Below are positions 5,201-54,540 of a stretch of DNA of 64,000 bases, piece after piece. The stretch covers positions 38,316,001 through 38,380,000 of the forward strand of contig CM060733.1 in the NCBI GenBank assembly GCA_030704615.1, in the 5' to 3' direction. Source of the DNA: Takakia lepidozioides. Lineage: Eukaryota > Plantae > Bryophyta. Position 1 is the stretch's first letter. Each line of letters starts with the position of its first letter. Position numbers and translations under genes: made by a program. The notes below the pieces were generated by a model, which did not search any database, was not told where the DNA came from, and saw nothing but the letters and a program-made list of their open reading frames with translations.

Positions 5201-5341
5201 CCCACAACGGGGTTCGTGCAGTGGGCGGGGTAGAGCGATGGAGGGCGGGGTTGCAGAGTGTTGCAAAGCGTGCAGTGTCGGGGGTTCGATCCCGGGCTGT
5301 CTCAGAGCATCCATGGTCGTCTCGCACCTGTAGAAGAGAGA

Positions 5342-14931: not shown

Positions 14932-15971
14932 TCTGTCTTCCCATTTTCCATATGGTCCAGATGACACATCCCATTTGATCAGATGTGAGTGAGACATGGG
15001 CAAGGAGTCTCCTGGGTTTCAGATTTTTTCCTGGAGATCATGCAAATGAGTATATGGAAACTAGTCTATTGTACATGACCTTTCTTGGTTGAAATTTCAA
15101 TCATACAAAGCCCTGTGCCTTACTATGCCCCCTAGCAGTAGTACTATTATTGCATCTACAGAAAATTGCAAATAATCCAAATGTTAGAAAATCTTTTGAA
15201 GTGCCATATGATTCTAAGAGGCTAACCCACTGATGAGCTTGTAACCTGGCCCATCACACTGCAGTAGTGCCCTGCTTCCATTCCCCCAACCACAGAAAGA
15301 TTGAAAACAGACAGACTTGTCACCGCTCAAGTTAACTACACCTGAATGTTAACTACACCCAAATGATGAAACCCACATGAGATGTAGTTTTTCTCCTCTC
15401 AAACCACCAGGCATTGTCATCATCCTGTAGGAGAAGAGTGTAAGAAAAGACTGTAAGCAGGTAACATGTTGGCTGGGACAAGAGTAGAAGGGGAGTGGGG
15501 GCACTTGAGACAGAGGACATGTTTGATGTAACACTTTGGTTTGTGTTGTGTCAATATGTCACTTCATAGCTGCAAATAACATTTCAGTTCGAATCCCCAA
15601 GTGCCCAAGTGATGGTTTGGTGGCTTTCTGCTCCTTTATGTATACCCAAAAAGTAAATGAAAAAGTATGCAACTATTAAACCCTACAGGACTGGATTTTT
15701 GGCCAACTTCCCTGGACCCAGAGGGTAAGTTAGAACCAGTGCACCTGCCCAAATGCTAAGCTTAGCAGCCAGGTGTGGCTGGGGCCTTACTGTACATACA
15801 CAAATGCCTCTACCCCACATGGCAGAATGTGCCTTGTCAAATCATTTTGCATCATAGTGGATTTGAAAACCCAAGATTGGATGTTACAATTGATTCCCTA
15901 TTGAACCTATGCGAAAGAATTCTATTGGAGACAACTGCAAGAATCAGCTCTCCCTCTTCCAAATGCCTAGC

Positions 15972-18200
15972 CTAGCATTGCACAACCGCGCACGCAGCGC
16001 CATTCTTGACATAGGGCAAATCAGGACCTCGTGACCACTCTTGTGCACATGTGTCGTAAATGAGCACTAAGCCCTCCTTATAACCACGGCCATTGCGCCC
16101 GCTTCTGCGAAGAAGATCATCAATTGACCCTCCCACCTGCAGAGTTGTGAACTAAAAATTATGTCAACGATACACAGAGCGAGAACAATTCAGAAATTGC
16201 ACTTTAATTGTACATTTGGCCTCAAATATCAAATGTGCTCAACATGGCCAGGATATGTTAAAAGTTTCCACCCTCGGAGGTTCTATTAGGACTATCCGCA
16301 AGCATCACCTGCTGTAATTTTGGAAGCCCAAACCAAGCTTCAAAACTGTCCAGCGATTTCCTCTGTGCTCTGTCAGTGTCTCTAAAACAAGGGGAGAACA
16401 TTCATAGCAAGGTGTGAATTGGATTGTTTATTTTAGCTCCTCCCTCTATTCAGCTTCAATAAAGCCCATAGGTTAGAAATGGACAGTTTCTAAATCTATA
16501 ACTTTTTCTTGGAAAAACAGTAATGTTGACACACCTGAATAATGTACACAGAACTCCCCATTGTCACGCAAGAAAACTTCAAGTAATTGTCGATCCGCAA
16601 TGGAGATGGTATTGGGGGAGGCTTGATTCGACTCCAGGATTCCTCCCGAGTGTCGAACTTCCAAAAAGAGAGTTCAACAGCATGACTTGAGAGCATGTAG
16701 ATACCTGGCCCAACCACGGTACAAGCAATGACACAGCCTCCCATTGGAAGCACTCGTGTCTTTTGCCAGCTGTTGGTTTTTGGGACATATGCGTCCATGG
16801 AACCCACATAGGCGTAAGGCTGCATTGATAGCCCAAGCATGCTGCTAAACTTCAAGCCCCCAATGACATAGAAGATACCGTTGACCGCTGCTCCTAAGCA
16901 CCCATACCTCCTGAAAGACGGAAACTATGACTCATTAGAAGATGTGGTAATAACAGAAGCTGTGGTATGAATATGACATCTAACTGAACTACATATCACA
17001 CGCCACTTTCACACAAAGATCCCATGGGGTTGACATTGAGGAGCACTAAAGGATACTAATCAACCTCCAGAGTCTGACGTTGAGCGCAATCATGCGACTG
17101 CAGTCACATCACCACCATTTGAGCATAGGGCACCTTTTCCATACCGGCACCTCACCACTGCTGATCAGATTCTTTTTCCCCTATTTCCACTGTCGGAGAA
17201 AAAAATGGTGGTTGGAGAGAGGGAGGGCACATCCTAGCTACCAAGCCTTCCTACCTGAACCCAGGATTGATCTTAACATATATCTTTCTGAGAGAGGGCT
17301 TCATAACCTCAAGTTGGAGTGGTGCAGCAGACTCCTTCAGTGGGTAAGTTCTATGATTAATTGTGGCTCATAAATTGTCAGGAAAACCTACCAGGGGGCT
17401 AAGTCTATGCAAAGAGCAAGGCCAACTGATTTTCTCACATACCTGCGCGGCATGCTTGCAATTGGCCTCCAGGTATCAAGCCCAGGAATGTACTGTTCAG
17501 CATCCATGATGGCATCGCGGCTGGAGTCGTTTCGATTAGCACCCCCAGCAACAAAGATTCGATCGCCAATCACACAGCATGCAAACTTTTTCCTGGGGCA
17601 AAGCATTGGAGCGCCGCGCGTAAGCGTCTTAGTCCATGCATCATACACAATTGTGCACTCTATTCCTAAGGGTTTTGAGGAGAGGCAAGGCACAGCCCCA
17701 AGGATGAAAATCCTGTGCTTTATGACGGCAGGCTGGGCATGAAGGAGAGCGTGGTCAGCACTGTGGTAGTCAATCAGCCATTCATTCTCAACTATTGAGA
17801 GCAGCGAGCACAGCAATCCGGCCCGCCAGCCACCGCTACTCTTGCAGTAGACCGCAGACGAGAGACCAGTCCCAGCACCACCAAACACAAACAGCAAGCT
17901 CTCCACCCGCCCATTCTTCCTCCTCATCTCATAAAACTCAGATGATTTCAGTATGCAACGCCAATTCTGGCAGACCATCATGGCACTGTGAAGAGCAGCT
18001 CGCGGCATTCTGGCCAGGCATTCGAGTAATACATCGTCAGGAAGGGAAGAGATAGAGAAGGGTGGTTCTTTTGCTGGCAGTTTCTCGTTGGGTAGTGATC
18101 GAGGAGGCCAGCATCCCTGAACCAAACCCCGCAATCCAGAACGAGACGACAATTTTTTCTTAACCCCAGGCGGACGTGCTGCAACAGGTGGTGAGGCCAT
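15972..18200 (-). CDS. F-box/kelch-repeat protein
   Basis: F-box LPDDVLLECLARMP..VCQNW followed by kelch repeats (IFVAGG..WRPIASMPRRRYGC..FYVIGG); phase-consistent exons 17443-18200, 16535-16910, 15972-16136. Confidence 0.92.
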
Positions 18201-18465
18201 CTCTCATGCTCCCTCACCCACCTTCCCTTAAAACTTCATCTCCCTACCACTCACTCTGCATTGCTCATAACACAAAGCACAGCCCTACTTCACCCATCTC
18301 TCCCTGCCATCTTCCCTGCTGCAGCGAAGACTACCCGCCATAGCCAATGCATCCCCTTTTGCCGAGTCAGACCAGCCCTGTCACCCCCACTCACCTCTCT
18401 GCTCCATGTGCCCCCTCTGCCAATCAACTGTCCTCCTTTCTTTATATGGCCCTCTTGGTCCCCCC

Positions 18466-18488
18466 CTCTCTCTCTCTCTTTCTTTCTT

Positions 18489-18520
<32 letters not shown>
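18466..18520. repeat. (CT)n/(TG)n microsatellite upstream of the kelch gene
   Basis: Directly visible dinucleotide runs. Confidence 0.9.
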
Positions 18521-18521
<1 letters not shown>

Positions 18522-19190
18522 TGTCTTTGCCCTCAAACTTAGCCAATTTCCCTGCTCTCAATGTTGGGCAGGTATATTTTTCGCCCTATGTATATTTTTC
18601 ACTGTGCTGTCAGAGATTCCACTCTTTATCTTTATCTTGCATTAAGTTCTTGCACTGTTGCTATTATTCTCCGGTTGGCAGACCTCACAAGTGCGTTCGG
18701 ACATGGTTGGAACCATGAAAGGAGGAGGGAAGACTCGACAAGCGTAACTTATGGTATCACTTTCACCCCACATGGCTGCTGCTCTCCCTTTGGAAGGTGG
18801 ACATTTCTAATGGCTACATCCGAGGCAATGCGGTTGCCCAACCCTACCGAAAGCCGCAAGCCGAAAGACTTGCAATGGATATATAAAATTTTAGTGATGA
18901 CTACAAGTCGGAGACCCATGGGAGGGTTAAGTAATACCTTGATCCAGTACCATTTTTTTCTCAGCAAAGCTCAAAAAGTCGACGCTACCTGAATCCATCC
19001 AAAGAAAGTATCGTCAAATCAGTATCGTCAAATCGTAAGCCTGCATTAAGTTTTTACATTATTTCTATTTTTTTTGCATAAAATATATTTCCAATCAAAA
19101 GAGAATGGACATTGACTTTTTGTAAAACTTGAATAGTGTTCTCATAAGTCGTCACTAATTTAATAGTGTGGAACAATGTCCATGTCCATG

Positions 19191-19293
19191 GGAGTCCACT
19201 TAACTGTCTAATCCAATCCACTCTACTCCGCGCTGCGGGTGATTGGGACGCCTGTCTGTCAAGGAGTCCACTTAATTGTCTAATCCAATCCAC
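19191..19293. repeat. ~31-bp direct repeat, two copies
   Basis: GGAGTCCACTTAA(C/T)TGTCTAATCCAATCCACT at ~19191 and ~19263. Confidence 0.85.
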
Positions 19294-20149
19294 TAGATGA
19301 TCCGCACCTCCATGTAGGGGTTGGTATCACGTGAGCACAGTGTGAGTACTGAGCATGCTATCTTGATGGAGAAGTTTCTTCCAAATGAAGCTTCCTGAGT
19401 AGTTTCCCAAGTTACTCTTGGTAATTTGGTAAACTCTCGGTAACTTGGTAAGTAATGGTAAATCATGATAGGTCATGGTAACTTTTGGTTACATGGTAAC
19501 TTAATAACTTTTGGTATTTACTCCTGGTAAGTTCATCTGGGCTATGTCCGTGACATCACCCCCTCCTCTAGCGCCAAGTTCCTCGAGGAGCGGTAAAATC
19601 TTGGACTTGCTTAGAGTTGGAGAAAATCCAAAATCCGACGAATGGTACTTGCCAAGTATTCGGCTCTTCGTTCTTGACTCAAATGATTTATAGGTCCCTG
19701 TAACCATCGATAGTGTCCAACACCTTGAACTTGGGACCACGCAGTAATTTGAGCATCTGATTTTCGAAACTGCCTTCAAACATGATTTCGTTGCTCTCTG
19801 GGTCCGAAGCCTCAACCTCCAACAGAATTATCAGACTTCGAGTAGGCTCCACTTGCCGTCGTACGGGGTCCAGACAAGGAAGTCCGCGTCGCATTGGTGG
19901 CCCATCGTCTCGAGAACGTCGGCGTGATGTTGAAGGTCGTGAGAGTCGGAACGGCTGATCTGGTAGTTGGGTAAGCGACAACTCTAATGTATCTGATTCT
20001 TGTAACTTCATGCTGTCAATACAAGATGCAAGAGTGCTGGAAGTGTAGCTATATATACTGATGTGTGGTACTCCTCTCTCATTAGCGTGTATCAGGTACA
20101 TTGAATGTGGAGTCTTCACCTTGAAGCTAACTTGGCTGACATCATCGTT

Positions 20150-23100
20150 GTGACGTCTTATTGACGTGTAGCTCGGGGCTTAGCTGTATATCGTTGATGA
20201 AACTCTTGGACTTTGTCAGATGCATTGGCGAGGTTGGATAAAGGTTCTCACTTTCGTTTGCTGATGTCGTAGCTTTTCCAATGTACGAAATACTCAAGAC
20301 GTTTATACTTGATACGAGAGTCTAGGACTTTGTCGACTTCATACTCAATTTCCTGATTGACTTCGATTGGTGGAGGTGGTACGGAGACTCTCATTGGAAT
20401 ATTCGATGGATGATACAACTCCAATAATGAAACATGAAAGACTGGATGGATGCGCATACTTCGTGGGAGTTCAAGCCGAAAACTGACCGAATTTATTTGT
20501 CGAATAATTTTGAATAGGCCCAAGCGTTGATAATCCAACTTCATTGATGGTCGCGAGGTTTGTATGTCCCGTCGAAGAAGCCACACACGATCTCCGACCT
20601 TGAACTGGGGTTGGAGTTTGCGACGTTGATCTGCATACTCCTTGTATTGTTTTTGAGCTTCTGTAAGGTGGAATGTAAGCTCCTTGTGAATCGTAGCAAG
20701 ATGAGTAGCAAGGTTTTCTGCAGCAGGGCTTCCAACAGTCTTCATGTAGAAAGGGTTTGCTCGAGGATGATGACCATAATTGGAGAAAAATGGAGTTTGT
20801 TGGGTCGAAGAATGTATAGTGTTGTTGTAGGCAAACTCAGCCAATGACAGAAGGTCCGTCCAATTATCTTGGTGATAATTTATCGTACAGCGAAGATACT
20901 GCTCCAAAATCTGGTTTACACGTTCGGTTTGACCATCAGTCTGTGGATGATTAGCTGTAGAAAGATTGATCTTAGTATCCAATATGTGAAATAATCCCCT
21001 CCAGAAATTTGATATGAACTGTGGTCCTCGATCAGATACGATGTCATTCAGGAGTCCATGAATGCAGTAGATATTATTGAGGAAGAGTCTTGCAGTTTCC
21101 TCACCGGTAATCGTCTTATTACATGGAATGAAATGTGTCATCTTCGTAAAACGATCTACAATAACAAGGATTGAATCGGTGGTCTTGGAGATTGGAAGGT
21201 CCGTAATAAAGACCATAGACACGGACGACCATGGACCCTTGGGAATGGGTAATGGTTGAAGAAGGCCGTAAGGTTGATGTCGTGGTCTCTTCGCTCTAGC
21301 ACACGTGTCGCAAGATTTTATAAATTCTTTCACGAGTTTCCACATCTGCGGCCACCAATAGTCCCTGGATATCAATTCCATTGTTTTGTTGAAGCCGAAA
21401 TGTCATGCAGCCGGAAGATCATGACATGTTTGAAGAATTCGAAGTTGTGTAGGTCATGGAGGTACATAGAGAAGTCCCTTGAAATAAAGCAAGTCATGTT
21501 TGAACTCGAAGTTGTTTGTAACATGTAGGTTGTCTCGAGGTCGATTTAGTTGACTTCGTAGTGTCATAGAGAATTGGTCGCTCTTCAGTGCTTCCTAAAT
21601 CTCCTTTATGATCTCTGCATCGTCATAGGTGGACATGGATAGCATATTCAATTGGAGATTTGTTGGTTTCAAGATGATGGATTTCTGTTGGTCAAAAGTT
21701 GCATTCCCTTCCTTTGGCGCAAAATACGATCGTCGAGAAAGAGCATCTTGGTTTCTTTGAAGATGTCCGGGACGGTAGGTAATAACAAAATCAAACCTTG
21801 CTAGTGACATACTCCATCTTGCTTGACGTCGATTCAAAACACGAGCACTCATAAAATACTCGAGGTTTTTGTGATCGGTATAGACAGTGACCTGATGTTG
21901 AGCTCCTCCAATAGATGACGTCACTCCTCAAAAGCATCGATAATCGCTAGAAGTTCTTTGTCATGGATTTCATAATTGATCTCCGCAGCGGAAAATTTGC
22001 GAGAACGAAAACCAACAGGGTAAAGTCGGCCATCTGTACCGTATTGAGAGAGTACCGCGCCAAGTGCAAAGTCCAATGCATCTGCTTCCAAAAATAATGG
22101 TTTAGATGGGTCTGCATGTACCAGTATTGGAGCCATTGTAAATGTCTGCTTCAGCCTTTCAAATGCTTAGTCAGCCTTCTCGTCCTATACAAATTTGTCC
22201 TTCCTTGTGAGTCGTGTCATTGGTGCAGCAATTTTGGAGTATTTCTGGATGAAGATTATATAGAAATTTGCAAATCCTAGAAAACATTGTATATCTCGGA
22301 CCGAAGTTGGTTTAACCCACTCGATGATGGTTTGCATTTTCTTCGAATCCATAAAGACTCCTTTGTCGGAAATAATGTAGCCCAAAAATTCGACTTCAGA
22401 TTGGTGAAAAAGACATTTTTCCAACTTGGCATATAGTCATTTTTTCCCTCAATTTATCAAGGACAAGGCGTACATGACGACCATGTTCTTCTTCATTATG
22501 CGAAAATATCAAAAATAGATGACTACAAAGTCATCTAAAAATTCTCGAAAGATGTCATTCATCATGTGTTGAAAATTTGCTGGAGCATTTGTGAGACCGA
22601 AAGTCATAACACTGTATTCGAAATGTCAATACCTTGTGCGAAAAGCAGTCTTACATTCGTCTCCTTCTTTTATTCGTACAAGGTTGTAAGCTCCTCTCAA
22701 GTCGATCTTTGTGAAAAAAATTGCTCGTCCAAGTTGTTCGAGGAGTCCGGAAATCAGCGATTTTTTATAGTGACTTTGTTGAGTCCACGATAGTCCACAC
22801 ACATGCGTAACGATCCGTCTTTTTTCTTCACAAATAAGATAGGTGCTCCCGCGGGTGATTTCGAATGTTGAATGAAATTCTTTGACAAATTTTCATCAAT
22901 GTATTCGCGTAAAGCAGCCAGCTCCGTCTGAGATAAATTGTAGATCGGGCCGAATGGTGGTTGAGCTCTTTCTTGCAACTCAATTGCACAATCATAAGGT
23001 CGATGTTCTAGCAACATGTCTGCATTTTTCTTCTCAAATACATCCTTGAAATCTTGATATTGAGTGGGTAATGTCGAAGTACCTTGGTCTGTTGTGGTTT

Positions 23101-24681
23101 TGATCGGAGTCGCATAAAGTGCAAATGTCGCGTCTTTTTTCGTAGCTCTCATGAAGGCTCTAGCTCCAAGAAACAGGGGTTGAATACCTTTGGTACTTTT
23201 GCATTTTTGTCTTGCCGAAATTTTTCGTAATCGCCAGTCGATGTCAGGATTATGAAGTACAAACCAGGGAAGTCCAAGGATCACAGGATTCGTTGGAGAC
23301 TGGATGACATTGAAAACAATATGTGATGCTTGATTTTTAAGCTTCATTTCAAGGGGTCGAGTTTCATGGTCAACATTTCCTGATGCTAACGGTCGTCCAT
23401 CGTTGACTTCAACAGAGGCCGAGAATTTCTTTCTTACGAGCGTTAAATTGGGTTGCTTCGTAAAGTCTTTATCAATAAAACACGCTGAAGCGCCCGAGTC
23501 CAAAAGTGCTTCTACGGAGATATCTCGATTTTGCATCCTGATCTTTACTGGAACTGTGAAACAAGATACAGGGTCTTGAGGTAGAAAAAGACATTTTTTT
23601 TTTTAGGAATTTGGGGTGTCCAGCCGCATGGTCCCTACTGTGACTGGACATCTTCGTTTTCCGACCTCCTCGTATCAAACACTTGAGTGGTGCCCCGAGC
23701 TTTGAATCTTCTCTTGTTGGGGCAGTTTAATGCCATGTGATCATTTTCTCCGCAATAAAGGCATAATCCATTCGAGCACCGTCTTTGTTTTTCATGTGGC
23801 GTCAATGGCTTGAATCGGACAGCATCAATCTACATATGATCATTATCGGATGTCTGATGGATCGTTGTATTTGGTGCCGTAGTAACAGCGGCATGGTGCG
23901 TCGTCGACCATCCAGATCGCTTCTCTTGACGTCTTTCGAACAAACGATTATCGCATGCAATAACCTGGGTGATGAATTCGCTCAGTGTACTCACGTTTGA
24001 CATTGTCAGCAACAAATCTTTAACATCATCTTTTAAGCCACATCGAAACTGACTAATGAGGCTCTTCTCATTCCAGTCAAGGTCGCACGCAAGTTGTCGA
24101 AACTCGGCAGCATAAACGGAAGCTGGACGTGCTCCTTATCGAAGATTTCGCATCTTTGTCTCTGCAACTCTCTCTCTATCATTCTCTCCAAACGTTGCAG
24201 TGAACTCGGACATGAACGCTTCAAAATTGTATAGTAAATGCAAATTTTTCTCTAATAGCGGTGCAAACCAAGATAGGGCAGTGCCTGATAGAAGGGTACC
24301 CACGAATCTCACTTGAATACCTTCATCAGAGTAACGTTGTGGATGTAGTCGTATGAACAATCGTACTTGTTGGACAAAACCGCGAAATCTTGATCTCGTC
24401 CCATCAAATTTCTCGGGCATGCTGACCTTTGGTTCCCTTATAATCTGTTGAAGATTTGGAGGAACCGTTGCAGTAGGATTTGTTGTAGTATGGACTCGTA
24501 AGGTTGAAGATCCATTGTTCGACTCCTTCAACTCTGAAATTTGTTGTTGCAAATTGTTGAGAGCATTGCCAAGGTCTTGAGACTGGTCAGCTTGTAGTTG
24601 GGCAGTAGCGGCACGAAGTTCTTGCATCTGGAGCTGAAGACTCTGCAATGTGGCGACCATTTTCGTAAATGTGTCTTCCAT
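20150..24681 (-). pseudogene. gag-pol of the chromovirus, with frameshifts and stops
   Basis: ORF fragments 24136-24681, 22754-23536, 22185-22424, 21921-22136, 21595-21924 and 20248-21381 in Gypsy order PR-RT-RH-IN-CHD. Confidence 0.92.
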
Positions 24682-30631: not shown

Positions 30632-32894
30632 ATGACCAAATATTTCTTCATAAAGGCAAAGCAAAGAAGGATGGCCTCTTCTATTGCTTCTCTCACAAAA
30701 CCGGATGGTTCGGCCACCACCTCCCCAAAAGAGATGGCTCTAATTGCAGAGCAGCATTTCGCTTCGTTGTTCTCCAAAAGAGCTGCCTCTGCTGAGAAAG
30801 AACAGGCCTCCACCTCTATTCTGCATTCTATACCATCGCTCCTCTCAGATGAAGAAAGACTGGAGCTGGATGCCCAACTTTCTGACTCAGAGCTGGCCCA
30901 CGCTCTGCAATCCCTCCAGTCTAGAAAAATGCCGGGGTTAGATGGATTGCCTATAAAGTTCTTCAAAGCGCTATGGCATACTATAGATGATGATTTTATG
31001 GCGTTAGTTAAAGACGTCCTCTCTAAAGGCATTACGCCTTCTCAAATATCTATAGGTCTTATCACTTTGATCTATAAGAAGGGGGACAGAGGGTTACTAA
31101 CCAACTATCGTCCTATTACGCTCCTAAACACCACTTATAAGATCATTGCCAAGGCTTGGCATTGAGATTACAGCCTATCCTTGCCAGGATCATTAGACCA
31201 GAGCAAACTGGATATCTCAAGGGAAGAATGATCCTAGACAACCTGCTTCTAATTAATGAGGCTTTACACAAAGCCAAACATTCGGAGGAGCCCCTGGCTA
31301 TTCTCATGCTAGACTTTGAAAAGGCTTTTGATAATATAGATTGGATTTCTTGCATAAGGTGCTGGACAAAATGGGCATGCCAGCATCCTTTTCCAAGTGG
31401 GTAAGGATCCTCCTAAGTTATGCGTCAAGCAAGGTCTCGGTTAACGGGGCTATATATCCAAGTCTTTTGCTCTTCACAGATCTGTCAGGCAGGGCTGCCC
31501 ATTGGCCCCTTACCTTTTTCTAATAGCAGCTGATGCGTTAGGTCATTATCTCGGCTCCAGACATGGTATACTGGGTCTAAAAGTGTTGGGGGACTCATCT
31601 GTCAAATTGTCTATGTACATGCCGATGATTATACTACTCTGCTGCTCAACAATGAAAGCCAGGACAATATCAACAGGGCTTGTGAGGCCTTGCAGCTTTT
31701 TTGTTTGGCTTCTGGTCTCAAAGTGAACTGGAACAAGTCAGTTGGGCTTCTCACCAGGAACTGCTTCTTAATGCCAGCAAGAGTCATGGCCTCCCTGGGG
31801 TCAGGAGTGGGGCCTTAGGTGGTTGCAACCCGGTACTGCTCACACTTTGCTGGGTTTCCAAGTGGATATTGGTCTTTCTGAAGAGCAGCGACAGTGAACC
31901 TATTCTTCGGAGGCTCCAAAACAGCTGTCTTTCTGGAGCTCCGCTATGCTCTCAATTGCAGGTAGGGCTCTTGTGCTCAATCAGATTTTACTCGCCTCCA
32001 TGTGGTTTTTAGCCTCAGTCTGGTCCACTGGAACTAAGCTCATCGCCAAAATTAAAGCGTTGATGTGAAATTTCCTGTGGGGAGAATCCCCATCGGCTCC
32101 TACCAAGCGAGCGCTAGTCTCCTGGGCCCAGCTCTGTAGGCCTAAAAAGAAGGTGGTCTGGGCCTTATAGACCCCTCATGGCAGATTTGTGCTCTACTAG
32201 CTAAGTGGATTCCTAGGACTATCTATCATGGGGATAGCCCCTGGTGCATTAATCTGGTTAGAGAGCATCTGCTCAACTCTCTACCCTCTTGCTCCTCTTT
32301 GTGGGCACCGTCCCTGAAATGGCTGGTGTAGGGACCTGTCAAAACAAAGAGCAAAGGCTCGAGGGCTTGGAACTCCATTTGGGCAGCTTGGAGCTCCATC
32401 AGGCCACATCTGCAGCAGGTAAGGGCCTCTTGCTTTGAGGAAGCCATCAGGCAGCCGTTATTTGGCAATCTCAATCTCAGTTGTGAGCCCTTATCTACTT
32501 TGAGCAAAAAGTGGGCTACATTGGAGTCCAAGGGGCTCTCGCATGTTGCCAATGTTTGGGAAAATGGAGACTTCCTGGAGCCTCACATTCTTTCTTCTCT
32601 TCTCTCGGCTTCCTCAATTCGTAATGACTGGGAATTAGTTAGGCAAGGGGTCTTGAATGTCATGCCACTACTAACAGGAGGAGGCTGCACTGCCAGTGGT
32701 CTTCCTTGTTGGTTTGGCAGAACCGTGGGGCTCGTTATATGCCTTGCTGGCAATCGAATCGACCGACTCGCAGTGGCTAGGGCTCATGTTTCATTCTTCG
32801 CCAGATGGTTCGCTTTTGTTTCTAGGATCGGGAGAATTTAAGCATGAGGAGGCTTATAGGATCAGAGTCTTGGAGACTTCCTCGGGTATCTTGG
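30632..32894 (+). mobile_element. L1-like LINE reverse-transcriptase remnant, frameshifted
   Basis: TKYFF, KMPGLDGLP, NYRPITLLNTTYKIIAK, EQTGY..GR.I.DN, LDFEKAFD, RQGCPL.PYLF, ADD, W..LC.PK.EGGLG. Confidence 0.9.
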
Positions 32895-35800
32895 CTTGGG
32901 GGGTGCACTCTTTATAAACTGTGCGTATCACGTGCGTTTGTCGCCTAATAAAAAAACCCCATGTATACGGGTCCTTGGATAATTTATACCCCCTCTATAC
33001 ATACTTTTTGAAGATTATAAAACCCCCTCCTGTAAATATACAAAAATTTATAAATTTTAAAAAGTACCCCCTTTTGTATGTATAGTCTCATTTTCCATCA
33101 TTAAAAATAACCCTCCAATATGTATATGTATGTTTTTATATTATATCGAATTTATTCATTTAAAACATAATAAAATCTAATAAATTAATTAAAAAAATTT
33201 ATTTGCCTTTGATAAAGTTGTCAAAGACTTTTCGGTCATTTGCATCAAGTACATATGTGTTTGACTTGACATTGTACTTTAAACATGCTAACGCGATAAT
33301 GGAATCCAAATCAACCATCATGTTATCCGTCAAATCGTACGTATAGACCCCTCCTCGAATTTTTTGGTACCATGCTAACCCAATCTCCATATGAGAAGGA
33401 CGCTCCAATAAATCAACAGAATCCCTACATTCTACAAACCGCTTATTGATTTTCTTCCGCATTCTTTGAACCATGCCCAAATACCAAGTGCCTTTGGTTG
33501 CTCCTCTGTAGGTTTTCCCTGGTCTGCCTTTCCTGTTTGTAGTTTGGATCGCAGTCTCCTCATCAACAAAAAATACAGCACAATCCGAACCCAATCCCAA
33601 GCTCGTGGCTTTGTTGCTGGTAGTTGGTTTGTTTTCTCGGCAAAACAACATCGATGCACTTCTTACTCGTGTCAATCTATCCTTGGATAGAGTAGGGTTG
33701 CCATTGAGTTGGCTAACCAAAGTGCTTTTGAATATGGTATTCCCGTCTATTTTGACAAATGGAACCATCACCTTCGATCCATCTTTCTCTTGTTCAAACT
33801 CATCAATGACAGCATCCAGAGTATGTCTCAATTCACTTTGAATAAGTACCTCTTCCGCATGATCATCCAAAGGTTGGCTCGAAACATCCTCCATTGAATT
33901 CGAAGGCCCGCACACCAATTCATCTTCCACGACCTCATTTTGAATATGTGTGTCTGCATTAAGAGGACAAATAGAATCTATGGCATCGACATCATCACCC
34001 TCCTCTTCCATGCTTTTGAATAGCTCGGCCTCCATTTGTCTCTCAATTGTCCATGGCTCATTCCACCAATCCAAGTTTGTCGCTTTGTTTGGTTTCATCC
34101 CAAGTTTATGGCATAAAAGTTGCGCTTCTAGAAATCCAGTTTTCAAAGCCTCCACAATGCAATCATCCGATTGGACAGTAGAAAAGTCGGACAAATCAGC
34201 AAGGGGGATACCTGGCTTCTTCTCCAAAGAAAACCAAATGTGTTCTTGTTTCTTGTGAGCTCTTGAGAACTTGGGTCATTTTGGATTCACCTCGAACTCG
34301 GATATGCGTGTTAATGCTCCTGCACTCTCAATCAAATCACACCCGTCATATGTCCTCTCATTCCGTAACATACCTCCCACTTTGCTGAAGAATATTTCAC
34401 ACACATCTGAACCAACAAGGCTCAAAAGAACTTGCACATGATTAAACTTATCCTTGAACAATTTGATAAGTAGAACCACGTAGTGGCATGAAATTTGTAA
34501 ATCCAAGTATGTTTCCCTGCTAATGAAGAAGGATTTCAGATTATACACCTCGTGGTGGAATAACCACAACTTCCACAATCTGAAAAAAAACGATACATTC
34601 GCAGCAGATTGTACCCTCTCACACAATGACATGTGAGGAGACAAAAAAATGTCGATGTAGCATGAAATGATGTATAGGTAAAATTCAGTATTTTTGGTCC
34701 TCTCCCTTCGATGATTCACAGTTGATTGTAACTCCCTCAAACAAGCTTGCACCTTCCGAGATGCCAGTCGTTGAGCTGCTGCCCAATTCTGTCGATCTTC
34801 TCTTTTGATATCACATTCCCGAAGTCCATGCTTGTCCACTGAAAATGAATGGTAGACCAATAACACATGATTCAATGTAGCAACCTCATCACCCAACACC
34901 AAAGTCCGTGATGCACTGTCCAAGGGATTTACCAATTTTTTCCCATTGTGGATGAAGTCCTGATCATGGAGTCCGTATATATCTCCCCAGTTGCACACTC
35001 GACCTGTAAACAACCATCCTTCCCAAGGGATGCAAAATCTACTTCCAGCCCCATTGGCATAATCTTCTAACATCACTTTTCTCCTCCTACTATCTCCGTC
35101 TGAAGCATGCCCAATTATAGGCCCAACCACGTCCCTCACATATTTGTCCCACAACTGTCTCACCACTTCCCATTGTGATCTCACAAAATTGTTGTCAAAT
35201 CTATTGCAAGTGAGCTGGATTACCAATACCAATCGAGGTAATCGTACATGTAGAGGATTTGCTATCAACACTCTGGCGTAATGGGCAACCACATTGTTTT
35301 TGAATGCCTCCACAATATGTTCGTACCCTGATTCCCCTTCTCCCACTTGCACCACAAAATTTGAAATACATACATGGTTGTCTTGAAGCCCACAGAACCC
35401 GAGAAGGGTGTCATCCCTAGCAATCCAACGTACCAATCGCTTCACAACAGTTTCATCTTCGGCCACCATCACTGGGATGCTTCCCATTGGAATATTTGCA
35501 TCTTCCATCACATCTCTGTAAATTCCAGCCACATGCTGAAATATATCATCCCTTCTCCCGCTCTATACTTCAAACCTTTCCTCAAAGACCGTCTTGTAGT
35601 ATCAATAGAAGGACCCCCCACATTTGAAGCCAAAAAATGATGCAATCTCGGACCCCCCCAAAGCTGCACAGTCTCAAACATTGTTTTTGTGCTAGTACCA
35701 TACCTCTTCCCTTGTGGAGACCTGTCAATATTCTTGCCCATATCAACAATAAAATCCCACAAACTTTCTTTTCCTTCAAAATCCCCCCTCCTATGTGCAT

Positions 35801-37607
35801 CAACAATATCACGACAAAATTTGAGAACATCTCCTCTTTCAATTGCCTCAATCCCAGACTCCTTCAAACTCCTACATCGCACAGACAAGGATGCCACTTT
35901 GGTCCTGGCCTCCCACAATTTGAACCTCAACTGCCTCAACTCCTGTCTGTTTTTGTAAACTTGTTTGACAATCTCGACATTTCCAAGATATGACAACCTT
36001 CTTCCCTTGCCAGTATCTCTCTCCCCTCTATATTCCATGGCACCTCTCTCTCTATATACCCTCATTCTGAAGTCATTTCCAAGGGAATGGAAGAACATGC
36101 TGAACACCTCAAGTTTGGAAATGGCTCCCCATCCAATGACACTCTAAACAATCCGCGTGCCGAAACGTACCAACAACCTTATGCTCTTGATTGTTTAGAG
36201 TGATGGTTGCATGTGTCAACGGCTCGACATACCACTTCTTTCCTCCCTTGCTATCTTGAAGGAATGGTTTCAGACTTATTCTCTTGTGGTTGTACTCCCA
36301 CCATTCATCCCATAGGCCCCAACACAAACTGTCTCTTCCTTTGTTGCATTGGGACCTTCGCTGTAATTGTCAATCCTCAATCAGATCTGCCCGTTGGGCA
36401 GCGTCAACACAAGTGTATGGAGTTTGTGACGAGGATGCTCCCATTGTTGATGCCACAATTGGATTGTCAAGTGGTGGGGACGGCAACACAGGTTGACTGA
36501 CCAAGAAAGAGCTTAGATCCCGTTGCTTTACATCTTTGGCAATCATAGGCTTTGGAGGCCTTCCTCTCTTTTTGCACAGTCCTTCACTACTTCCAACCTT
36601 CTGGCAAATCTCTGCATCGACATGAGTTTTCCCTTCACATGCTCTGTCAAAGAAGATTGCAAAGAACCTGTCCTTGGAAACAAGAGTAGCCACTTCGAAT
36701 CAAGTGCGCACTTAATCCTTATGGAACCCAACTGCGAATAGTCTCCAATTGTGGCTTCCACAATCTCAAATTTGTTTCCAGGATTGTCCTCACAAAACCG
36801 AGCGACTTCCTCTAATGCCTCTTTCACCCTGTTCTTCTTTGCATCTAATGCTTCATCTGCATTTACAGGGCTGATGACACATTGTGATGAACCCTTCCCA
36901 TGACGCCTCTCATAGGCTATGCGATGCCCCTCACTCCTCAAATGAGATCTCATAAAGTTTGCACATGCATCATATGGTTTGTTTTTCCCAGACCGTGCAT
37001 AAACATCCTCACACTCAACACACCATATGTGGAACATTGCTTGTCCTTGTTGATCCTTTGTCATGAGCTCAAACTTGTCACATCGTCCTTCTGCAGAGAT
37101 TTTCCTTTCAACGGCTCTAATCTCTTTCTGCCATTTTTGAATATCGCTGGATGTAGCCAATGTGCTGCACAATCTACCATATCTCTGTTGAAGTGCATGC
37201 TCATGTGCATGGTCTTCATTTCCACCATCGCCAGCAAAGGGTGTATCAGGGTCCATCCTCATCTTTTTAGACACTGGTGCCGGGTCCTCGCCTGGTCTGT
37301 CCTCATGCAAGATCGTAGAACCACTGGAAGATAGAGGTCTTTTCAATCCTTGGTCCCCATCATTTTGGTCTGAAATCTTAATGTGTACAGTATCCCCTTT
37401 CAGAACCATCCTCTCTTCCTGCTTGGCTGAAAGGACACTACCCCCCATGGAAAGGAAATGAAATTTTCCTGAGACAAGCTCATCACCTAGAATTTCTGCT
37501 CGGATGCATTTGTATGTGACACCTTGCATAGTGAACACAGAACCAAGCCTGTTTGGTGATGCATCTCCTCCAACGAGCAGGACTTTTACTTCCAACTCTT
37601 CTTCCAT
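32895..37607 (-). mobile_element. P-element-superfamily-like DNA transposon, decayed; one terminus predicted at 32895
   Basis: Transposase motifs as in the next feature; AT-rich 3' subterminal region; CACGTG at +34 from 32895, the same offset as in the related element at 45224. Confidence 0.7.
33199..37607 (-). pseudogene. P/THAP9-like DDE transposase, ~1,470 codons, broken by 3 frameshifts and 2 in-frame stops
   Basis: AEDET..RW....LLGFCG, GHASDGD, DFIH (DxxH) NGKKLVN, EDRQNWAAAQRL and GSDVCEIFFSKVG. N-terminal zinc-finger-like CxxC..H..H motifs and AT-hook KKRGRPPK. Stitched from ORFs 36543-37640, 36370-36693, 36109-36327, 35508-36107, 34276-35532 and 33199-34227. Confidence 0.8.
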
Positions 37608-38144
37608 GATGAGTTCACCTGCAAAATGCAATGAAAACATTTCAAATCAGACCTTGATAGACCAATAACAAAGCACCCAGGTTGGAAGGTTCCAAAGTCC
37701 TATTTTATACAGCCCTATAGGCTGTCCAAGCAGGGACTACGTTGATAAGAGGATGAAATGTGTACAGAAGCAAGTACCTGATTGATGAGTTTGATGCTGC
37801 TAATTCTTGCTGCTGCTATTGACCAAGTGCTGCTACTTCCACTGCTGGTAGCCCTCTTGGGTGATCCTGAACCCACAGTCCATCCTTGCATCAGCGGCTA
37901 GCCCTCCCTCCACACTAACATATTTAAATACAAAGTTATGTCAAACTCCCTACGATGTTGCATGAAGAAAGCTCACCTTGTTGACAATATTGTCCCACCG
38001 TTGTGGATCATATTTATAGAACTCCTGCCAGCGCTGTTCCTTGCTCCAAATCTGGCCCTCTTGGATGATTTTGCACCCACGATCCTCTCCCTGCATCAAC
38101 AGCTACCCCTCCCTCCACACTAACAATGCGTACATCATGCCTCT

Positions 38145-38782
38145 GCAGCTGCTACAGTGGCTTCCAGTTGACCATCTACCCATGCAGGTTTCTTGTAGCT
38201 ATCCTTCCACATGGAATCATAGGTAATCTGGAGCTTGGAATCCGGCCATCTGGAAATTTAGGGACGACTCTGATAACAGGGAAAAACAGGCTGAAATGTG
38301 TTGAAGAAGGTACCTTCATTAGCAGTCCCTTGTTCTATCAATTGCGCTGCTGCCGCTGCTATTTCCAGTTGACCATCTCCTACATTGTCCCACCACTGAC
38401 TGGGGTCAGAAAAGTATTCATTCCTTGAAAGCTTCTCTCCATCTCTGTTATCTTTTTTTAGGTATTGTCATGCTGCCACCTCGGCAGTAACTTGCAAAGT
38501 CACTCCAAAGCACCGCAGATCCACCCAACGAGCTAACTTACAGAATTCAATACATATGCTTCAGGGCTGAGTCTGATGAGAGGGAAAAACAGGCTGAAAC
38601 AGGTCAAACCAGAAGGTGCCCTCAGGCTGAAATGTGTTGAAGAAGGTACCTTCATCAGCAGTGCCTTGCTCTATCAATTGCGCTGCTGCTGCTGCTGTTT
38701 CAAGTTGACCATCCACCCACATTGTCCCACCATTGACTGGGGTCAGAAAAGTGTCTCATTCCAAAGCTTCTCTTCATCTCTG
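38145..38782 (-). repeat. Scrambled, degenerate duplications of the dynein-fragment region
   Basis: 38145-38310 resembles 41107-41305; 38500-38552 resembles 41319-41372; 38289-38447 resembles 38624-38782. Confidence 0.8.
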
Positions 38783-40660
38783 TGGTGCTATTGCAGGGTG
38801 ACTTCAATGCCCAAGTGGGCAAAGGGCTCCATCAGGACGATATCATTGGGTCTTCTGGTGAGGACGAGCTGAATTCTAATGGCAGACGGTTAATTAACTG
38901 TCTGGAAGAGCTTCAGCTTTTGACCTTGAATAACAAGACAAGAGGTGACCAAGTGCAGTGGACTCGTGAGAAATCCCAAACTGGGGAACGTTCCATTGTG
39001 GACTATATCATAATGGACAAAAATTTGTTCCCCCAGTGTGCCAATGTGTTGATCGACAGAACTGATATTGGTACCTCTGACCACTTCCTGGTTTGGACTG
39101 AGATCAAAAGGTGTTTTCCCAACACCAGAGTAGAAGAGATTCTCAAGGACTTGGACCTGGATCTGCAAGTCTTGACCCTGCTGGATAAATCCGACTTAGA
39201 GGCTGTAGTGTCCAAAGCCATGTCTGTTGCCATGAGATTGTCTGATGAAAATGAAGTTAGGCAGAAAACTTCCCTGAACTTGTTTCTAGTCAGTGACATG
39301 GGGGAGGACATCTTGGATGACCTCAAGGGTCCACCCACTCTCGGCACTAGACTGAAATTTAAACTCAGGGAAGGAAGCCTACCTTTGAACAGCAAACAGA
39401 AGCAAAGAGGAAAGGGGGAGTGCACTTCCCATTGTGTGGGCAATCTGAAGACAATATTCATTTTCCGATACACTGTCCGAGGTTCTCTCACCAAAGAGAC
39501 GCTCTCTTCAAATCTATCAAGGGAATTGTGCATGAATTGTCCTCCAATTGTAATTGGGATGCACATATCCAGAAAGTTGTTCAAACTGGCAAAGGCAAAG
39601 CTCTGGGGCTCACTAAAATTTTCCACTGCAGAGGGGTCAACTCTAAGGTTAAGAAAACCATGCTTTCTCGCGTTATTAGACCTACCTTGGAGTACGGATC
39701 TGCTATATGGGTTGATAACTCCAACCAGGCTAAGTCTCTAGAATCCATTCAAGTGGGGGTGCTTAAGGAGTGTATGTCAGCATGCTCCAAAACAGCCAAT
39801 GTGGCTGTTCGGGGTGAGTTTGGCATTCCATCCTTAAGCTCCCGACGAGATGAATTCATGGTCAGATGGTGGGGTCAGCTGCAACATATGCCCAACACCA
39901 GATATCCTAAGTTAATCGACTCTATATCTTGGAAACAGGACCGCCCTGTCAAACAGGCAAAGCCCTGGCAGAAGAGAGTAGAAAAGATTCTCAAGGACCT
40001 GGACCTGGATCCGCAAGTCTTGACCCTGCTGGATAAATCTGACTTAGAGGCTGTAGTGTCTGAAGCCATGTCTGTTGCCATGAGATTGTCTGATGAAAAT
40101 GAAGTTAGGCAGAGAACTTCCCTGAACTTGTTCCAGTCAGTGACATGGGGGTGGACATCTTGGATGACCTCAAGGGTCTACCCACTCTCGGCACTAGACT
40201 GAAATTTAAACTCAGGGCAGGAAGCCTACCTTTGAACAACAAACAGAAGCAGAGAGGAAAGGGAGAGTGCAATTGTCCGTTGTGTGGGCAACCTGAAGAC
40301 AATATTCATTTTCTGATACACTGTCCGGGGTTCTCTCACCAAAGAGACGCTCTCTTCAATTCTATCAAGGGAATTGTGCCTGTACCCCTGTTTACCAACT
40401 TTGAAAGTCTTGAGGCTGAGCCAAAAGCCCAGGCCCTCCTGAGGCCTAGTTTTTGGGCAAATCACACACAGCAGATTGATGCTTGTGTGAAGGGATTTCT
40501 AGAGGATATCTGGAAAACCCGGATTAATTCTATATATGAAGGTAAGTCTTACTACCAACGTCAGCCCCTGACAGAGGTAGGTTTTGTCCCTTTTGTTCCC
40601 GCTCAAACTGGGCGCGGGGTCAAAGTCCACAAGGCTATGGCGAACAACGTCTTATGAGTA
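38783..40660 (+). mobile_element. APE-type LINE remnant with RT core deleted and an internal ~405-bp duplication
   Basis: Endonuclease motifs LQGDFNA, SIVDYI and SDH; post-RT thumb (IRPTLEYGSAIW) and CPLC..ED..HFLIHC zinc knuckle; 39127-39531 duplicated at 39975-40379. Confidence 0.85.
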
Positions 40661-45050: not shown

Positions 45051-45960
45051 CACTAGAAGGAAAATGTGAAATAACCACTGGTCCCTTTAACCACTTCTGT
45101 CTTTTATCACTCTATCAATCACTCACAGTAATGGTAATTAACCACTTGCAAGTGGTTAATCCCGATGAAATGCCACGGTGGCATTAAATGAAGACTGAAG
45201 TGGTTGGAAGTCCCACCCCCGAGCCTGGAGAAGTCACCTTCTATCGTTTGTATAGGGCACGTGAGATAAATGGGTATTTTGTAGGGGGATATTATTTTTA
45301 TTTTGGGAATTTTTTAGTACCCTATAATTACGTAATTTTGTAATATGGTGAATTTTTATATGCAATTTTAATTATATATTTTTTGTTTCAAACAAATAGT
45401 ATATACCATATATTAGTAATACAATTTTTTTTTCCCAAGATAATTGGATTTATTTTTTGGTTGAAATAAATTCATTTAAAGCATTCGCATCATCATCATT
45501 CAAGGTATAAACGTTCTGCGCTCTATCAAAAGTCATAGTGACTGAACTAATAACGTCTACATCTATCCACTTGTTGTCGGTATGATCATATTTGAGTTTA
45601 AATTGTCCACTAGATTTTGAGGAAGCTAAATACAAACATTTGTATCCTCCCCCTAAAAATACGTATATATTTTGGAAAATTTCCATAGGTATTTTATCAA
45701 CCCTATAGTAATCTTAAGAAAAAACTGTAATGAGTTATTATTTTAGACCCTATATTAATTTAAATTCCCTGATCACAATATAATGTACCCTTTATTATTA
45801 TTATTATTATTATTTCTAATTTTTATCTCTTCAAAATAAATTGCACCCTATATTTTTTTGCACATCGGTTGGAAATCCTTGGAAGTGACTTCCCCAGGCC
45901 CCCGAGAAGGGGCAGTAGCCGTGAGGCGAAGTGGCTCTTAGTCACGTTGGTTTCGGCTGG

Positions 45961-46398: not shown

Positions 46399-48429
46399 TT
46401 ACATACACATCAGTGATTGATACCGCATTTGTGGTGATACATGAAAATGTTTAAGTGGTTTGTGCATCTGTGACAGACTTTGAAAAGAGTCATAGTATTC
46501 ACTCTCTGAATCACTTTGCTCAACTGGAATAACGGTAGGCTGTACAAATGCCGCTTGAATGGTTGCCAACACAACCAGCTCTTCTCTATTTAGAGCCGTG
46601 GCACTATGTAATGACCTAGGTATGGGCTGATCTGATAAGGTAGACGGTGCTTGCAGACCATCAAAATGTGCATTTTCTCCAATGTCACATTGATCTACGT
46701 CCGCCACAATTGTTTCTGCTCTTGGATCCTTCCGAAGGACTATCTTCCACTTCGAACCTGTTGACTCATCAGAAAAAAACACTTGTTCAACTTGAGAGGG
46801 AAAAATGAACGACTCTTCATCTTCGGGCAACATCCTCCCAAAATTCGCAAGAAGAAAACCATATGAATCCCTTTTCATTTTAGCATTTTCTCCAACGATC
46901 CTCACCCAAGCACAACGAAATACAATTGGGTGTACTCGCCCATAATCCAGTTTCAAGATCTCTTTGATGACCCCAACGTAGTCTAAAGGTGACATGACTG
47001 AATTTCTATCACGCACACTTGGATTTCTACTCTCTTGGTGAAAGATGGATCTGGAATCAAAAGAGACAAGAAGACGACTCTCCGTGTCGTCCATTCGATA
47101 ATGTTTTCTATATGCCTTCATCCCACAAAATGAGGCTGATCTCAACGAGGGGGGAGAAGACAAATGAACGAGATCCCTATCCTCAACAATATGCTCAGAG
47201 ACATGGGCCTGGAGCGCACGGCGTATCCATACCAGTAGGGGTCGAAACTCCATCAAATGGTTTGGGTATTGCACCGGAAGGTTGAGCTGACTTCGATTGG
47301 CATGTCATCCATGACTAAATGTCTCTCTGTTTGCTATGAACTGTGCCTTCCCTGTTGCATACTTCCTGTCACAAGATGACAAGAAGAATGACACGTTTTA
47401 GCAATGTGTTGCATTACTTGGCACCCCAACCTAGCATGACTGCTACTTTGAAAACCACAAGAAGAACCATTGGAGGAGTGAGCAGTATTTGAACATGCTA
47501 TTATAACAAAGCACTCACTCAGACATTCAGTTACTATTGAAGTGGTTATAATCACCAATGAACTACTGATACCAATCGACAATCGTGACTTTGTGGGTGG
47601 AATCATCCACTGGTGATAGTCAAAATTGAAATTTCACTTCATATGAATAAAAAGCAATGAAAGATTACATATACTCAGTTATGAACCTCATGGCCTCATC
47701 AAGAACATACCCTGCAGCCATACTCACTTCTGGCTTTGCTAAATTCCTAACATACCCCTCGAGACTTTCATGTAATGGTCCATGGGGTACATCCACCGTG
47801 AAGACACCAGACCACATGTGTCTAGTTCATCTACGAGGTGAACTAACAAATGGGTCATGACATCAAAGAAAGAAGGGAAACACTCTTTCTCTAACAAACA
47901 CAAGGTGATAACAACATCCTCACGTAACGAATTTATTTCCAAAGGGTCCCATACTTTGGCACAAATTCGGTGGAAAATGCGACTGACACGCATAATGACC
48001 CCACATGGGCCTGGAGCCATGCAATGGCGAATACACAGGTACAATCTGTTGCATTAAAACGTAATAATCATGGGACTTCATACTCGTCAAATGTTTCCTA
48101 GACGGGTGTATGTGTTTCTGAAATGCATTTGCAAATCCCGAAGGGATTTTGATAGCCCCCAAAGTATCAAGAAATCTCATGATTTCAGCGGGAGTGAGAA
48201 CATACGGTGCTGCTGGTTTCATGATACTTGAAGGCCTGCGTGGATCAGGGCGAAGCCACAAGTGCCGTCTGATGCCGACAACCTCCATGTCGTTCCTCAC
48301 CTTCACACCGTCCTTCAGTTCAAAAATTGTCTTCAATAAGTTTTCACAAAAATTCTTTTTGCAATGCATGGAATCCAATATGTAGCATTGCAAAAGATCT
48401 TGCAATTGGTGACACCATTTCAAGAACAT
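46399..48429 (-). pseudogene. CACTA/En-Spm Tnp2 transposase C-terminal remnant
   Basis: LDSMHCKKN, MKSHDYYVLMQ, FPSFFDVMTHLLVHLVDE..G.V..RWMYP, YVGVIKEILKLDY..VFRCAW and FIFPSQVEQVFF (DUF4218/DUF4216-type motifs). Confidence 0.9.
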
Positions 48430-53918: not shown

Positions 53919-54540
53919 GTACTCATAAAACATTTGTTGTGGGTTGTGGCCATAGCCCCGCGTCCAGTTTGGACCGAACAAGGGGGAACATACAGTAGCG
54001 ATGATTGCAGGATATGCACAACAAGGGGCGGGATGGAGGCTTCGGAGACCTATGAGCAAGGGGTGAAGCCCGACCGCATAATGTTTGTTTGCATTTGCAA
54101 TGCGTGTGCAAGCCTGGCAGCTCTGGAAAAGTGCAAAGTGGTCCATGGTGACATCGTCACATCTGGAATTGTACCCAATGTCATTTTGAACACTGCCCTG
54201 CTGGACATGTATGTCAAATGTGAGTGCATCGAGGATGCAAAGGGAGTTTTCGACAGTATGGCTGAAGGAGATGTGGTGTCGTGGAGGGCGATGATTGCAG
54301 AATATGCACAACAAGGGCGCGGGATGGAGGCGTTGGAGACCTATGAGCAATTGATGTGCGAAGGGGTGAAGCCCAACCGCATAACGTTTGTGTGCATTTG
54401 CAATGCGTGTGCAAGCCTGGCAGCTTGGGAAAGGTGCAATGAGGTCCACGCATGTGACATCTTCAAAGCTGGATTTGTACCATATGTCATCCTGAACATT
54501 GCCCTGCTGGGCATGTATGTCAAATGTGAGTGCATCGACT
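53919..54540 (+). pseudogene. PLS-class PPR gene fragment with tandemly repeated motifs
   Basis: GVKPDRIMFVCICNACASLAALE..VH..NTALLDMYVKC..A..VFDSM..DVVSW.AMI..YAQ.G.G.EAL repeated twice; truncated at both ends. Confidence 0.85.

Follow-up and report, generated by a model that had tools for sequence, protein, structure and literature searches.

The question raised by a locus in the bryophyte Takakia lepidozioides is whether land plants harbor transposons of the P type. Recent reviews recognize seven superfamilies of plant transposons with terminal inverted repeats (TIRs), P not among them (PMC10741241), and a survey from 2025, which screened 1,007 plant genomes with Pfam models, P included, recovered those seven only (PMC12973397). 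The locus lies in a stretch of 64,000 nucleotides (nt) of contig CM060733.1 (assembly GCA_030704615.1, positions 38,316,001 to 38,380,000; hereafter, the window, in which all coordinates are given unless a relative is named). On the minus strand, the ORF listing shows six collinear open reading frames (ORFs) at 33199-37640, with ~1,470 amino acids (aa) in total, which an initial annotation, made from the sequence alone, described as the pieces of a large P-like transposase. The analysis reported here makes it very likely that the locus represents an autonomous cut-and-paste transposon, in a copy that is lightly decayed and incomplete at its 5' end, and that the ~1,470-aa transposase is a deep, unannotated branch of the P/THAP9-like enzymes.

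The catalytic core and the reading frames

The evidence that carries this reading comes from the catalytic piece, an uninterrupted ORF of 418 aa (34276-35532, minus strand; the piece itself spans 34279-35532 and is followed by a stop). The six pieces were searched separately in every search, never as a joined or repaired protein. A word-indexed search with the catalytic piece retrieved 128 proteins, and an exhaustive search retrieved 1,840 cluster representatives (E≤1e-3), a result far beyond chance; the named matches are ‘hypothetical proteins' of the liverworts Riccia sorocarpa, R. fluitans and Calypogeia and of the fern Adiantum. The motifs pointed out in the initial annotation, namely, AEDET (D26, nt 35455-35457), ASDGD (D145, nt 35098-35100), DQDFIH (D192 and H195, nt ~34950), DRQNWAAAQRL and SDVCEIFF (E379, nt 34396-34398), are found at the expected places in the six-ORF array, and D26, D145, D192, H195 and E379 are invariant or at least 90% conserved among 42 diverse members of the family (alignment A1).

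The AlphaFold2 model of the catalytic piece, built on the A1 alignment, is of high confidence (predicted local distance difference test (pLDDT) score of 95, predicted template modeling (pTM) score of 0.92) and shows a five-stranded RNase H core, with D26 on strand 1, D145 right after strand 4, and E379 on the helix that follows an all-α insertion of ~180 residues (residues ~191-372), which itself starts at DQDFIH. The initial annotation had proposed a comparison of such a model by Foldseek and, run on the catalytic piece, this search placed the Drosophila P transposase at the top of the PDB list, with the other superfamilies far behind (6p5a, E 1.2e-11, TM-score 0.64/0.61 over ~430 columns, against TM≤0.41 for the runners-up RAG1, Transib and Hermes). 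An independent all-against-all comparison with VIA-align gave 6p5a a Z-score of 28.5 over 334 aa (root mean square deviation of 3.2 Å), compared with 9.3 for the next best structure and 8.5 for Hermes. Among the shapes of the ESM Atlas, unannotated clusters from Basidiomycota come first (TM 0.93 over 415 aa), followed by clusters annotated with PF21787, PF21788, PF21789, PF12017 and THAP (TM 0.74-0.85), and the language-model features of the catalytic piece match TNP-like clusters at 0.91-0.94. Thus, the P-like catalytic core read from the sequence is borne out by the P structure as the top match by a wide margin, and by the THAP9/P neighbors in the Atlas. The P-type split RNase H domain with its Asp-Asp-Glu (DDE) center and α insertion is present at the level of the fold only. 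The conserved C47/H53/C55/C109 cluster inside the RNase H domain (A1) suggests a putative metal site for which P has no counterpart.

The catalytic ORF is flanked, on the same strand, by four N-terminal pieces and one C-terminal piece: N1 (36543-37640, 365 aa), N2 (36370-36693, 107 aa), N3 (ORF 36109-36327, 72 aa; span of the piece 36109-36369), N4 (ORF 35508-36107, 199 aa; span of the piece 35508-36143) and C (33199-34227, 342 aa), which ends with a natural TAA stop at 33199-33201. The frame offsets between successive pieces are 2, 0, 1, 2 and 0, and every internal stop is TGA. In the closest relative, a 5.2-kb Logan contig (L003; 60% identical in the catalytic piece), all six pieces are collinear, with N3, N4 and the catalytic piece in one frame, the catalytic piece and C in another, and the break at a different place from that in the window; at the point of the N1/N2 frameshift, the intact N-terminal relatives are continuous (...HVNGKAH...GRPPKP). 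In a DNA run of this species, contigs that match the window at ~99% identity have one more nucleotide at each of four places (G after 35551, T after 36075, A after 36145, and T after 36626) and, on the plus strand, read C in place of A at 34278; exactly these five differences would bring the window pieces back in frame and remove one stop.

Compared with other copies, then, the window copy has four 1-nt deletions, of which that at 35551 causes the N4-to-catalytic frameshift, those after 36075 and after 36145 jointly cause the N3-to-N4 frameshift, and that near 36626 frameshifts N1. To these are added two in-frame TGA stops, one between the catalytic and C pieces (34276-34278, minus strand, offset 0), where the other copies have a sense codon and L003 is continuous, and one at the end of N2 (36370-36372, minus strand), located by frame analysis. 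Three of the four indels, including those after 36075 and 36145, lie in short homopolymers, and these three may be assembly errors. Introns were considered as the cause of the breaks and rejected, the relatives being continuous there and each copy being broken elsewhere; the breaks are true lesions in a single gene. Four deletions, two stops and the lack of a 5' terminus make the window copy nonfunctional in its present form. The family, however, was probably active recently in the host species, given that at least five of the six lesions are absent from other copies of the same species.

Terminal modules, element ends and surroundings

The regions outside the catalytic core are as the initial annotation had outlined: it named zinc-finger-like motifs, an AT-hook, a Cys-rich segment and a long C-terminal domain, and each of these is present and conserved. 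At the N-terminal end of N1 is a conserved domain of ~85 aa, followed by a coiled coil, a finger of the form C-x2-C-x22-H-x5-H (nt ~36924-37022), in which C207, C210, H233 and H239 are invariant (alignment A4), and a degenerate second C...H-x5-H unit. The end of this second unit lies in N2, followed by the AT-hook (KKRGRPPKP, nt ~36547-36573 in the N2 frame) and a Ser-rich linker, and N3 is a Cys-rich module (CWGLW...FRHADCLECH...) that continues with FxCxxC in the relatives, for an overall pattern of FRHxxC...FxCxxC. N4 consists of a basic stretch, a coiled-coil-like stretch and the segment LWGGPRLHHFLASNVGGPSIDTTRR (nt ~35574-35735), with LWGGxRLxNFLxxNxxGPSxxTxxR right before the catalytic piece, and is 47-54% identical to the fern copy and L003 (alignments A5 and A6). 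Judging by its location, which is that of the helix-turn-helix (HTH) domain of P/THAP9, the LWGGPRLHHFLASNVGGPSIDTTRR segment is a putative HTH-like domain. As noticed from the start, there is no THAP domain, that is, neither a Pfam match nor a C2CH pattern, in the window pieces; because this domain is reported to be restricted to animals (PMC7776569), it may not define the P superfamily outside animals.

The C piece starts with two to three helices that continue from the catalytic domain and proceeds through an acidic disordered linker to a β-barrel (residues ~205-342, nt 33202-33615), the sole part of the model of this piece that is confident. The piece has 65 homologs, in the same hosts and, in several cases, in the same proteins as the catalytic domain (alignment A3), and the C domain is recognizable in a distant, intact 1,119-aa ORF (contig L005). 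Both aligners rank the BAH domain and the chromo-barrel/Tudor/PWWP histone readers first for the barrel (Z≤7.5, Foldseek E≥0.011), a weak similarity that offers a lead, namely, that the barrel may tether the enzyme to chromatin.

The ends of the elements are most clearly defined in R. fluitans, where three copies share 88-90% DNA identity over ~5.5 kb as well as terminal blocks. One of these elements (L017, positions 9177-22190 of the contig, 13,014 bp) is bounded by 17-bp TIRs, CTCGGGGAAGTCACTCA and CTCGGGAAAGTCACTCA (16 of 17 positions matching), and by a perfect 8-bp target site duplication (TSD), GCATCATC; another (L016) has the same tips and a different perfect 8-bp TSD, AGACATCT. In the window, the element terminates on its 3' side at 32895 with CTTGGGGGGTGCAC. 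The TIR at this end, CTTGGGGGGTGCACTCT (32895-32911, plus strand), resembles the Riccia CTCGGGGAAGTCACTCA and CCTGGRGAAGTCAC of a miniature inverted-repeat transposable element (MITE) in the same window, and is flanked by a putative half TSD of 8 bp, TATCTTGG (32887-32894). The subterminal motif CACGTGCG (32929-32936, plus strand) lies 35 nt from the tip, and an AT-rich subterminal region with dispersed ACCCC...TATAC repeats (32937-33198, plus strand) separates it from the gene. A position at 32869 (CTTGGAGACTTCC) was considered first as the terminus and discarded, because matches to this sequence did not exceed the chance level and the alignment shifted the tip to 32895.

The MITE (45216-45906, plus strand) has TIRs CCTGGAGAAGTCAC and CCTGGGGAAGTCAC at 45224-45898, the motif CACGTGAG 35 nt from its left tip, and a perfect 8-bp TSD, CCCCCGAG, the only complete TSD of the family in the window; its TIR is nearly identical to that of R. 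fluitans. By its ends, the MITE is a non-autonomous relative that shares a TIR family with the P-like element. The motif CA(C/T)GTG(C/A)G is found 33-35 nt from the tip in the L017 element, the window element and the left end of the MITE, and is a candidate transposase-binding site. The TSDs of the two Riccia copies and of the MITE fall within the 7-8 bp typical of the P superfamily (8 bp in P, 7 bp in 1360 and Galileo; PMC3698922).

At the bin boundary 32896/32897, the depth of the DNA-run contigs jumps from ~56 to ~20,000, and remains at ~2,500-7,000 onward to 38018, which suggests many near-identical copies in the species, although contig depth does not equal copy number. The 5' leader (37641-38018, minus strand) belongs to the same depth class as the interior of the element and has no recognizable terminus; beyond 38019, a repeat of much higher abundance begins. 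Two runs guessed to be RNA yielded contigs that cover 33370-34900 and 35665-37616 at ~97-99% identity, with a 12-nt deletion at 34468 and an opposite-strand joint between 32898 and 33370 in one of them; these are possibly transcripts of paralogous or rearranged copies.

Members of the family differ greatly in cargo: the window copy ends ~300 bp past the stop codon, and the L017 element extends ~7.7 kb downstream of the transposase (14800-22190), with short ORFs only and no informative domain. Both Riccia contigs further contain a head-to-head TIR-like pair, GGGAAAGTCAC...10 nt...GTGACTTCCCC (14924-14961 in L016, ~15210 in L017), which could be the remnant of a mini-element or an internal transposase-binding palindrome. 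TIR searches on four other contigs (L001, L002, L003 and L005) yielded no clear ends. A marine relative on a TARA Oceans scaffold (L004, 2656-8039) is bounded by a 22-nt inverted repeat with no readable TSD and encodes an intact 1,123-aa ORF that ends in a PTM/DIR17 Tudor domain, along with a second, 531-aa ORF to which no function is assigned. The 24 contigs of another candidate source of TSDs (P0060) were rejected because they represent one locus sampled in many metagenomes.

The genes around the copy are those of a land plant and represent ordinary plant genome content. In the DNA run, the repeat at 38019-38780 reaches a summed contig depth of >200,000, and its depth is high in the two guessed-RNA runs as well; its units of ~150-200 bp are found again at 38270-38420, at 38570-38760 and, as a weaker copy, near 37860-38125, and it is adjoined by a LINE-like endonuclease ORF (38782-39741, PF14529) located upstream of the window copy. 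The rest of the window includes ORFs listed at 17388-18200, 20248-23536, 46399-47274 and 53934-54731, namely, F-box/Kelch, the integrase and protease of a chromovirus-type Gypsy element, DUF4216, a domain usually found in CACTA elements, and pentatricopeptide repeat (PPR) ORFs, as well as the plant box C/D small nucleolar RNA U31b (57597-57679, minus strand; RF01285, 54.9 bits).

Weighing the affinity to P and the origin of the family

Several observations weigh against the assignment of this element to the P-like transposons. None of the six window pieces has a Pfam match at E≤1, eight relatives of 1,005-1,546 aa yield nothing except one C-terminal Tudor domain, and a lone match to PF21787 (E=0.036) is found in one of the 42 A1 members. 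The PDB search with the single catalytic sequence returned noise only. In the search of PDB with the A1 profile, the P transposase is the best match, at a weak E-value of 0.019 and in three collinear stretches, and with the longer A6 profile, which includes the putative HTH, this match is not strengthened but lost entirely. Among the GTP contacts of P listed in a review (D528, K385, K400, V401, S409, F443, D444 and N447), ~3 of 8 are kept in this weak alignment (D528 as D, S409 as S, V401 as V/W), with K385 replaced by G, K400 by N and N447 by L, and D444 variable. The structural ranking was made with no structure of Kolobok, Dada or Zisupton to compare. As for the ends, an inverted-repeat scan, degenerate patterns, blastn-short with the left 66 and 306 bp, and a TIR-plus-TSD signature failed to reveal a second terminus of the window copy in the 64 kb, where there is also no second TATCTTGG preceded by a TIR-like sequence, that is, no partner for the half TSD; and in a BLAST comparison, the MITE and the end of the window element show no significant similarity beyond the short motifs.

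The identity between the catalytic piece and P is 14%, below the reach of Pfam detection, and what links the family to P is its structure and the order of its motifs rather than any sequence statistics. That the motifs follow the P/THAP9 order, as originally proposed, is seen in the single hidden Markov model (HMM) alignment that reaches P, where D, DxxH, the KxKVxxAxQ-like motif and E are in register: D230 of P corresponds to D26, SDTPHLIKLVRN to DQDYIHNgKKLiN, KQKVKLATQLFS to DRMNvesAQRlvS (KQKVKLATQ of P being aligned with DRMNxxSAQR of the family), and E531 to E379.

The alternative that survives best is that the family is a separate lineage of superfamily rank, a sister to P that shares with it only an ancient fold and does not belong in the P superfamily of Repbase. 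The blindness of the Pfam P/THAP9 models to the family, the lack of robustness of the HMM link, and the unannotated Basidiomycota clusters that are closer (TM 0.93) than any THAP9 cluster all speak for such a separation, and so does the TIR tip, CTCGG/CCTGG in this family, compared with CATGATG in the P element. Nevertheless, it is rather unlikely, because a Z-score of 28.5 over 334 residues that include the insertion domain is typical of comparisons within one family, the TSD is of 8 bp as in P, and the domain order (DNA-binding domain, coiled coil, HTH-like domain, split RNase H, acidic/C-terminal region) parallels that of P.

The placement of the family on a P-like branch leaves its route into plants to be explained, and here the initial annotation had suggested horizontal acquisition. 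The phylogenetic analysis does not uphold this suggestion. In a quick maximum-likelihood tree of 67 catalytic domains, most of them unlabeled and with an arbitrary root, all 11 labeled land-plant sequences fall in one clade, with 98 support in the Shimodaira-Hasegawa-like approximate likelihood ratio test (SH-aLRT), together with seven unlabeled ones and with distinct fern and liverwort subgroups. The window copy and two Logan contigs are placed beside the Adiantum group, Riccia forms a group of its own, and the sequences labeled ‘GoldUCD', presumably from an Aurelia jellyfish gene set, belong to the sister clade; no labeled non-plant sequence is found inside the plant clade. The identities among the plant copies (46-67%) indicate deep divergence, and the tree fits a long residence in land plants. 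Recent horizontal transfer into this plant or into land plants is thus unsupported because all labeled plant copies form one clade, and appears improbable despite the occurrence of relatives in hosts as different as Basidiomycota, the source of the TARA Oceans scaffold and the EukProt set labeled GoldUCD, and despite the record of P elements, according to a review, as agents of horizontal transfer in Drosophila. In non-seed land plants, namely, liverworts, ferns and the present host, the family occurs widely and has gone unannotated.

An assignment to another superfamily with a C/DxxH signature, be it Kolobok, hAT, MuDR, Dada or Zisupton, is slightly less credible still. This signature is common to all of them, hAT and Zisupton likewise have TSDs of 8 bp, in some Kolobok lineages a zinc finger comes right after the first catalytic D, the place of the C/H cluster in this family, and the structural comparison was blind to three of these groups. 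The TSDs, however, exclude Kolobok, because those of the family are 8 bp long and of varied sequence, with none being TTAA, and residues 196-378, between C/DxxH and E, are all helices without a conserved CxxC/H cluster. For hAT, the Z-score of Hermes is 8.5 against 28.5 for P, and no hAT, MULE or KDZ domain of Pfam, including the hAT dimerization domain PF05699, was detected in the pieces or in the long relatives. Finally, a domesticated host gene comparable to THAP9 is hardly conceivable even though P transposases have been domesticated repeatedly in animals, given the frameshifts and stops, the adjoining TIR with subterminal repeats, the multiple copies in the species, and the relatives that are elements bounded by TIRs and TSDs.

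A possible mechanism and comparison with known systems

For the P-like element, a cut-and-paste cycle can be envisaged along the following lines. The finger, AT-hook, Cys-rich and HTH-like modules would recognize the 17-bp TIR and the CA(C/T)GTG(C/A)G motif, and two protomers would be paired through the coiled-coil segments, as in P. The DDE center (D26, D145 and E379), the fold and residues of which are observed, would then cut the ends and join them to the target DNA, with the α insertion domain being homologous in fold to the GTP-binding domain of P. Attack on the target strands 8 bp apart would produce the 8-bp TSDs that are found in two Riccia copies and the window MITE, and the C-terminal β-barrel might, if the weak similarity to histone readers is meaningful, hold the complex on chromatin. 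A broader scenario, attractive although still doubtful, is that land plants host an old P-type lineage, still or recently active and invisible to Pfam, that works with a non-THAP finger/AT-hook head and possibly with a chromatin-reading barrel by which insertion is steered, and that may have lost the dependence on GTP, a trait peculiar to Drosophila P.

The absence of P elements from the 2025 survey of plant genomes is to be expected if Pfam cannot see this clade; the present results show that the absence of P from the plant lists is a detection problem. The characterization of the clade as poorly described thus holds, in that it is both invisible to Pfam and missing from the TIR superfamilies listed for plants in the literature. 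The annotation of plant transposable elements gains a superfamily with this P-type transposase, which has 8-bp TSDs and is widespread in bryophytes and ferns, the Riccia and Adiantum copies being currently left as ‘hypothetical protein' gene models, and the family appears to have been recently amplified in the host genome. It further provides a distant point of comparison for establishing which features of P, such as GTP use and targeting through THAP, are ancestral, and, should an intact copy be active, a candidate for a new transposon tool in non-seed plants.

Among the known systems, Kolobok shares with the family the C/DxxH signature and, in some lineages, the zinc finger right after the first catalytic D, but has TTAA TSDs, 5'-RR...YY-3' tips and, except in Kolobok1, a zinc finger between C/DxxH and E (PMC9587614), none of which is seen here. 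The hAT elements (Hermes, Ac) are similar in the 8-bp TSD, the N-terminal BED-type finger and the α-helical insertion in the RNase H fold, but differ in the low structural score of Hermes and in the C-terminal dimerization domain, which was not found in the family. The RepeatMasker/Repbase class ‘P-Fungi', the name of which implies P-like elements outside animals, has been tabulated for rust fungi, for Pleurotus and, among plants, for a legume. It may cover the Basidiomycota clusters that are the nearest kin of the catalytic piece (TM 0.93, 415 aa), and the family may already have been curated there.

The closest similarity is to P (6p5a/6pe2) and THAP9. As in these proteins, the RNase H DDE domain is interrupted between β5 and α4 by an all-α insertion (Z 28.5); also shared are the order D, D, DxxH...K...N, K/RxxN/VxxAxQ and E, the 8-bp TSD, the coiled coil and HTH-like segment upstream of the core, and the acidic stretch after it. 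In contrast to P, the family has a C2H2/BED-like finger, an AT-hook and a Cys-rich module in place of THAP, the C47/H53/C55/C109 cluster, an extra C-terminal β-barrel and a protein about twice as long, with CTCGG/CCTGG tips, land-plant hosts, 14% sequence identity and, in a weak alignment, ~3 of 8 GTP contacts. Thus, the element is of a known kind, the P-type cut-and-paste transposons, and what is new is the non-THAP head and the C-terminal barrel, not the mechanism.

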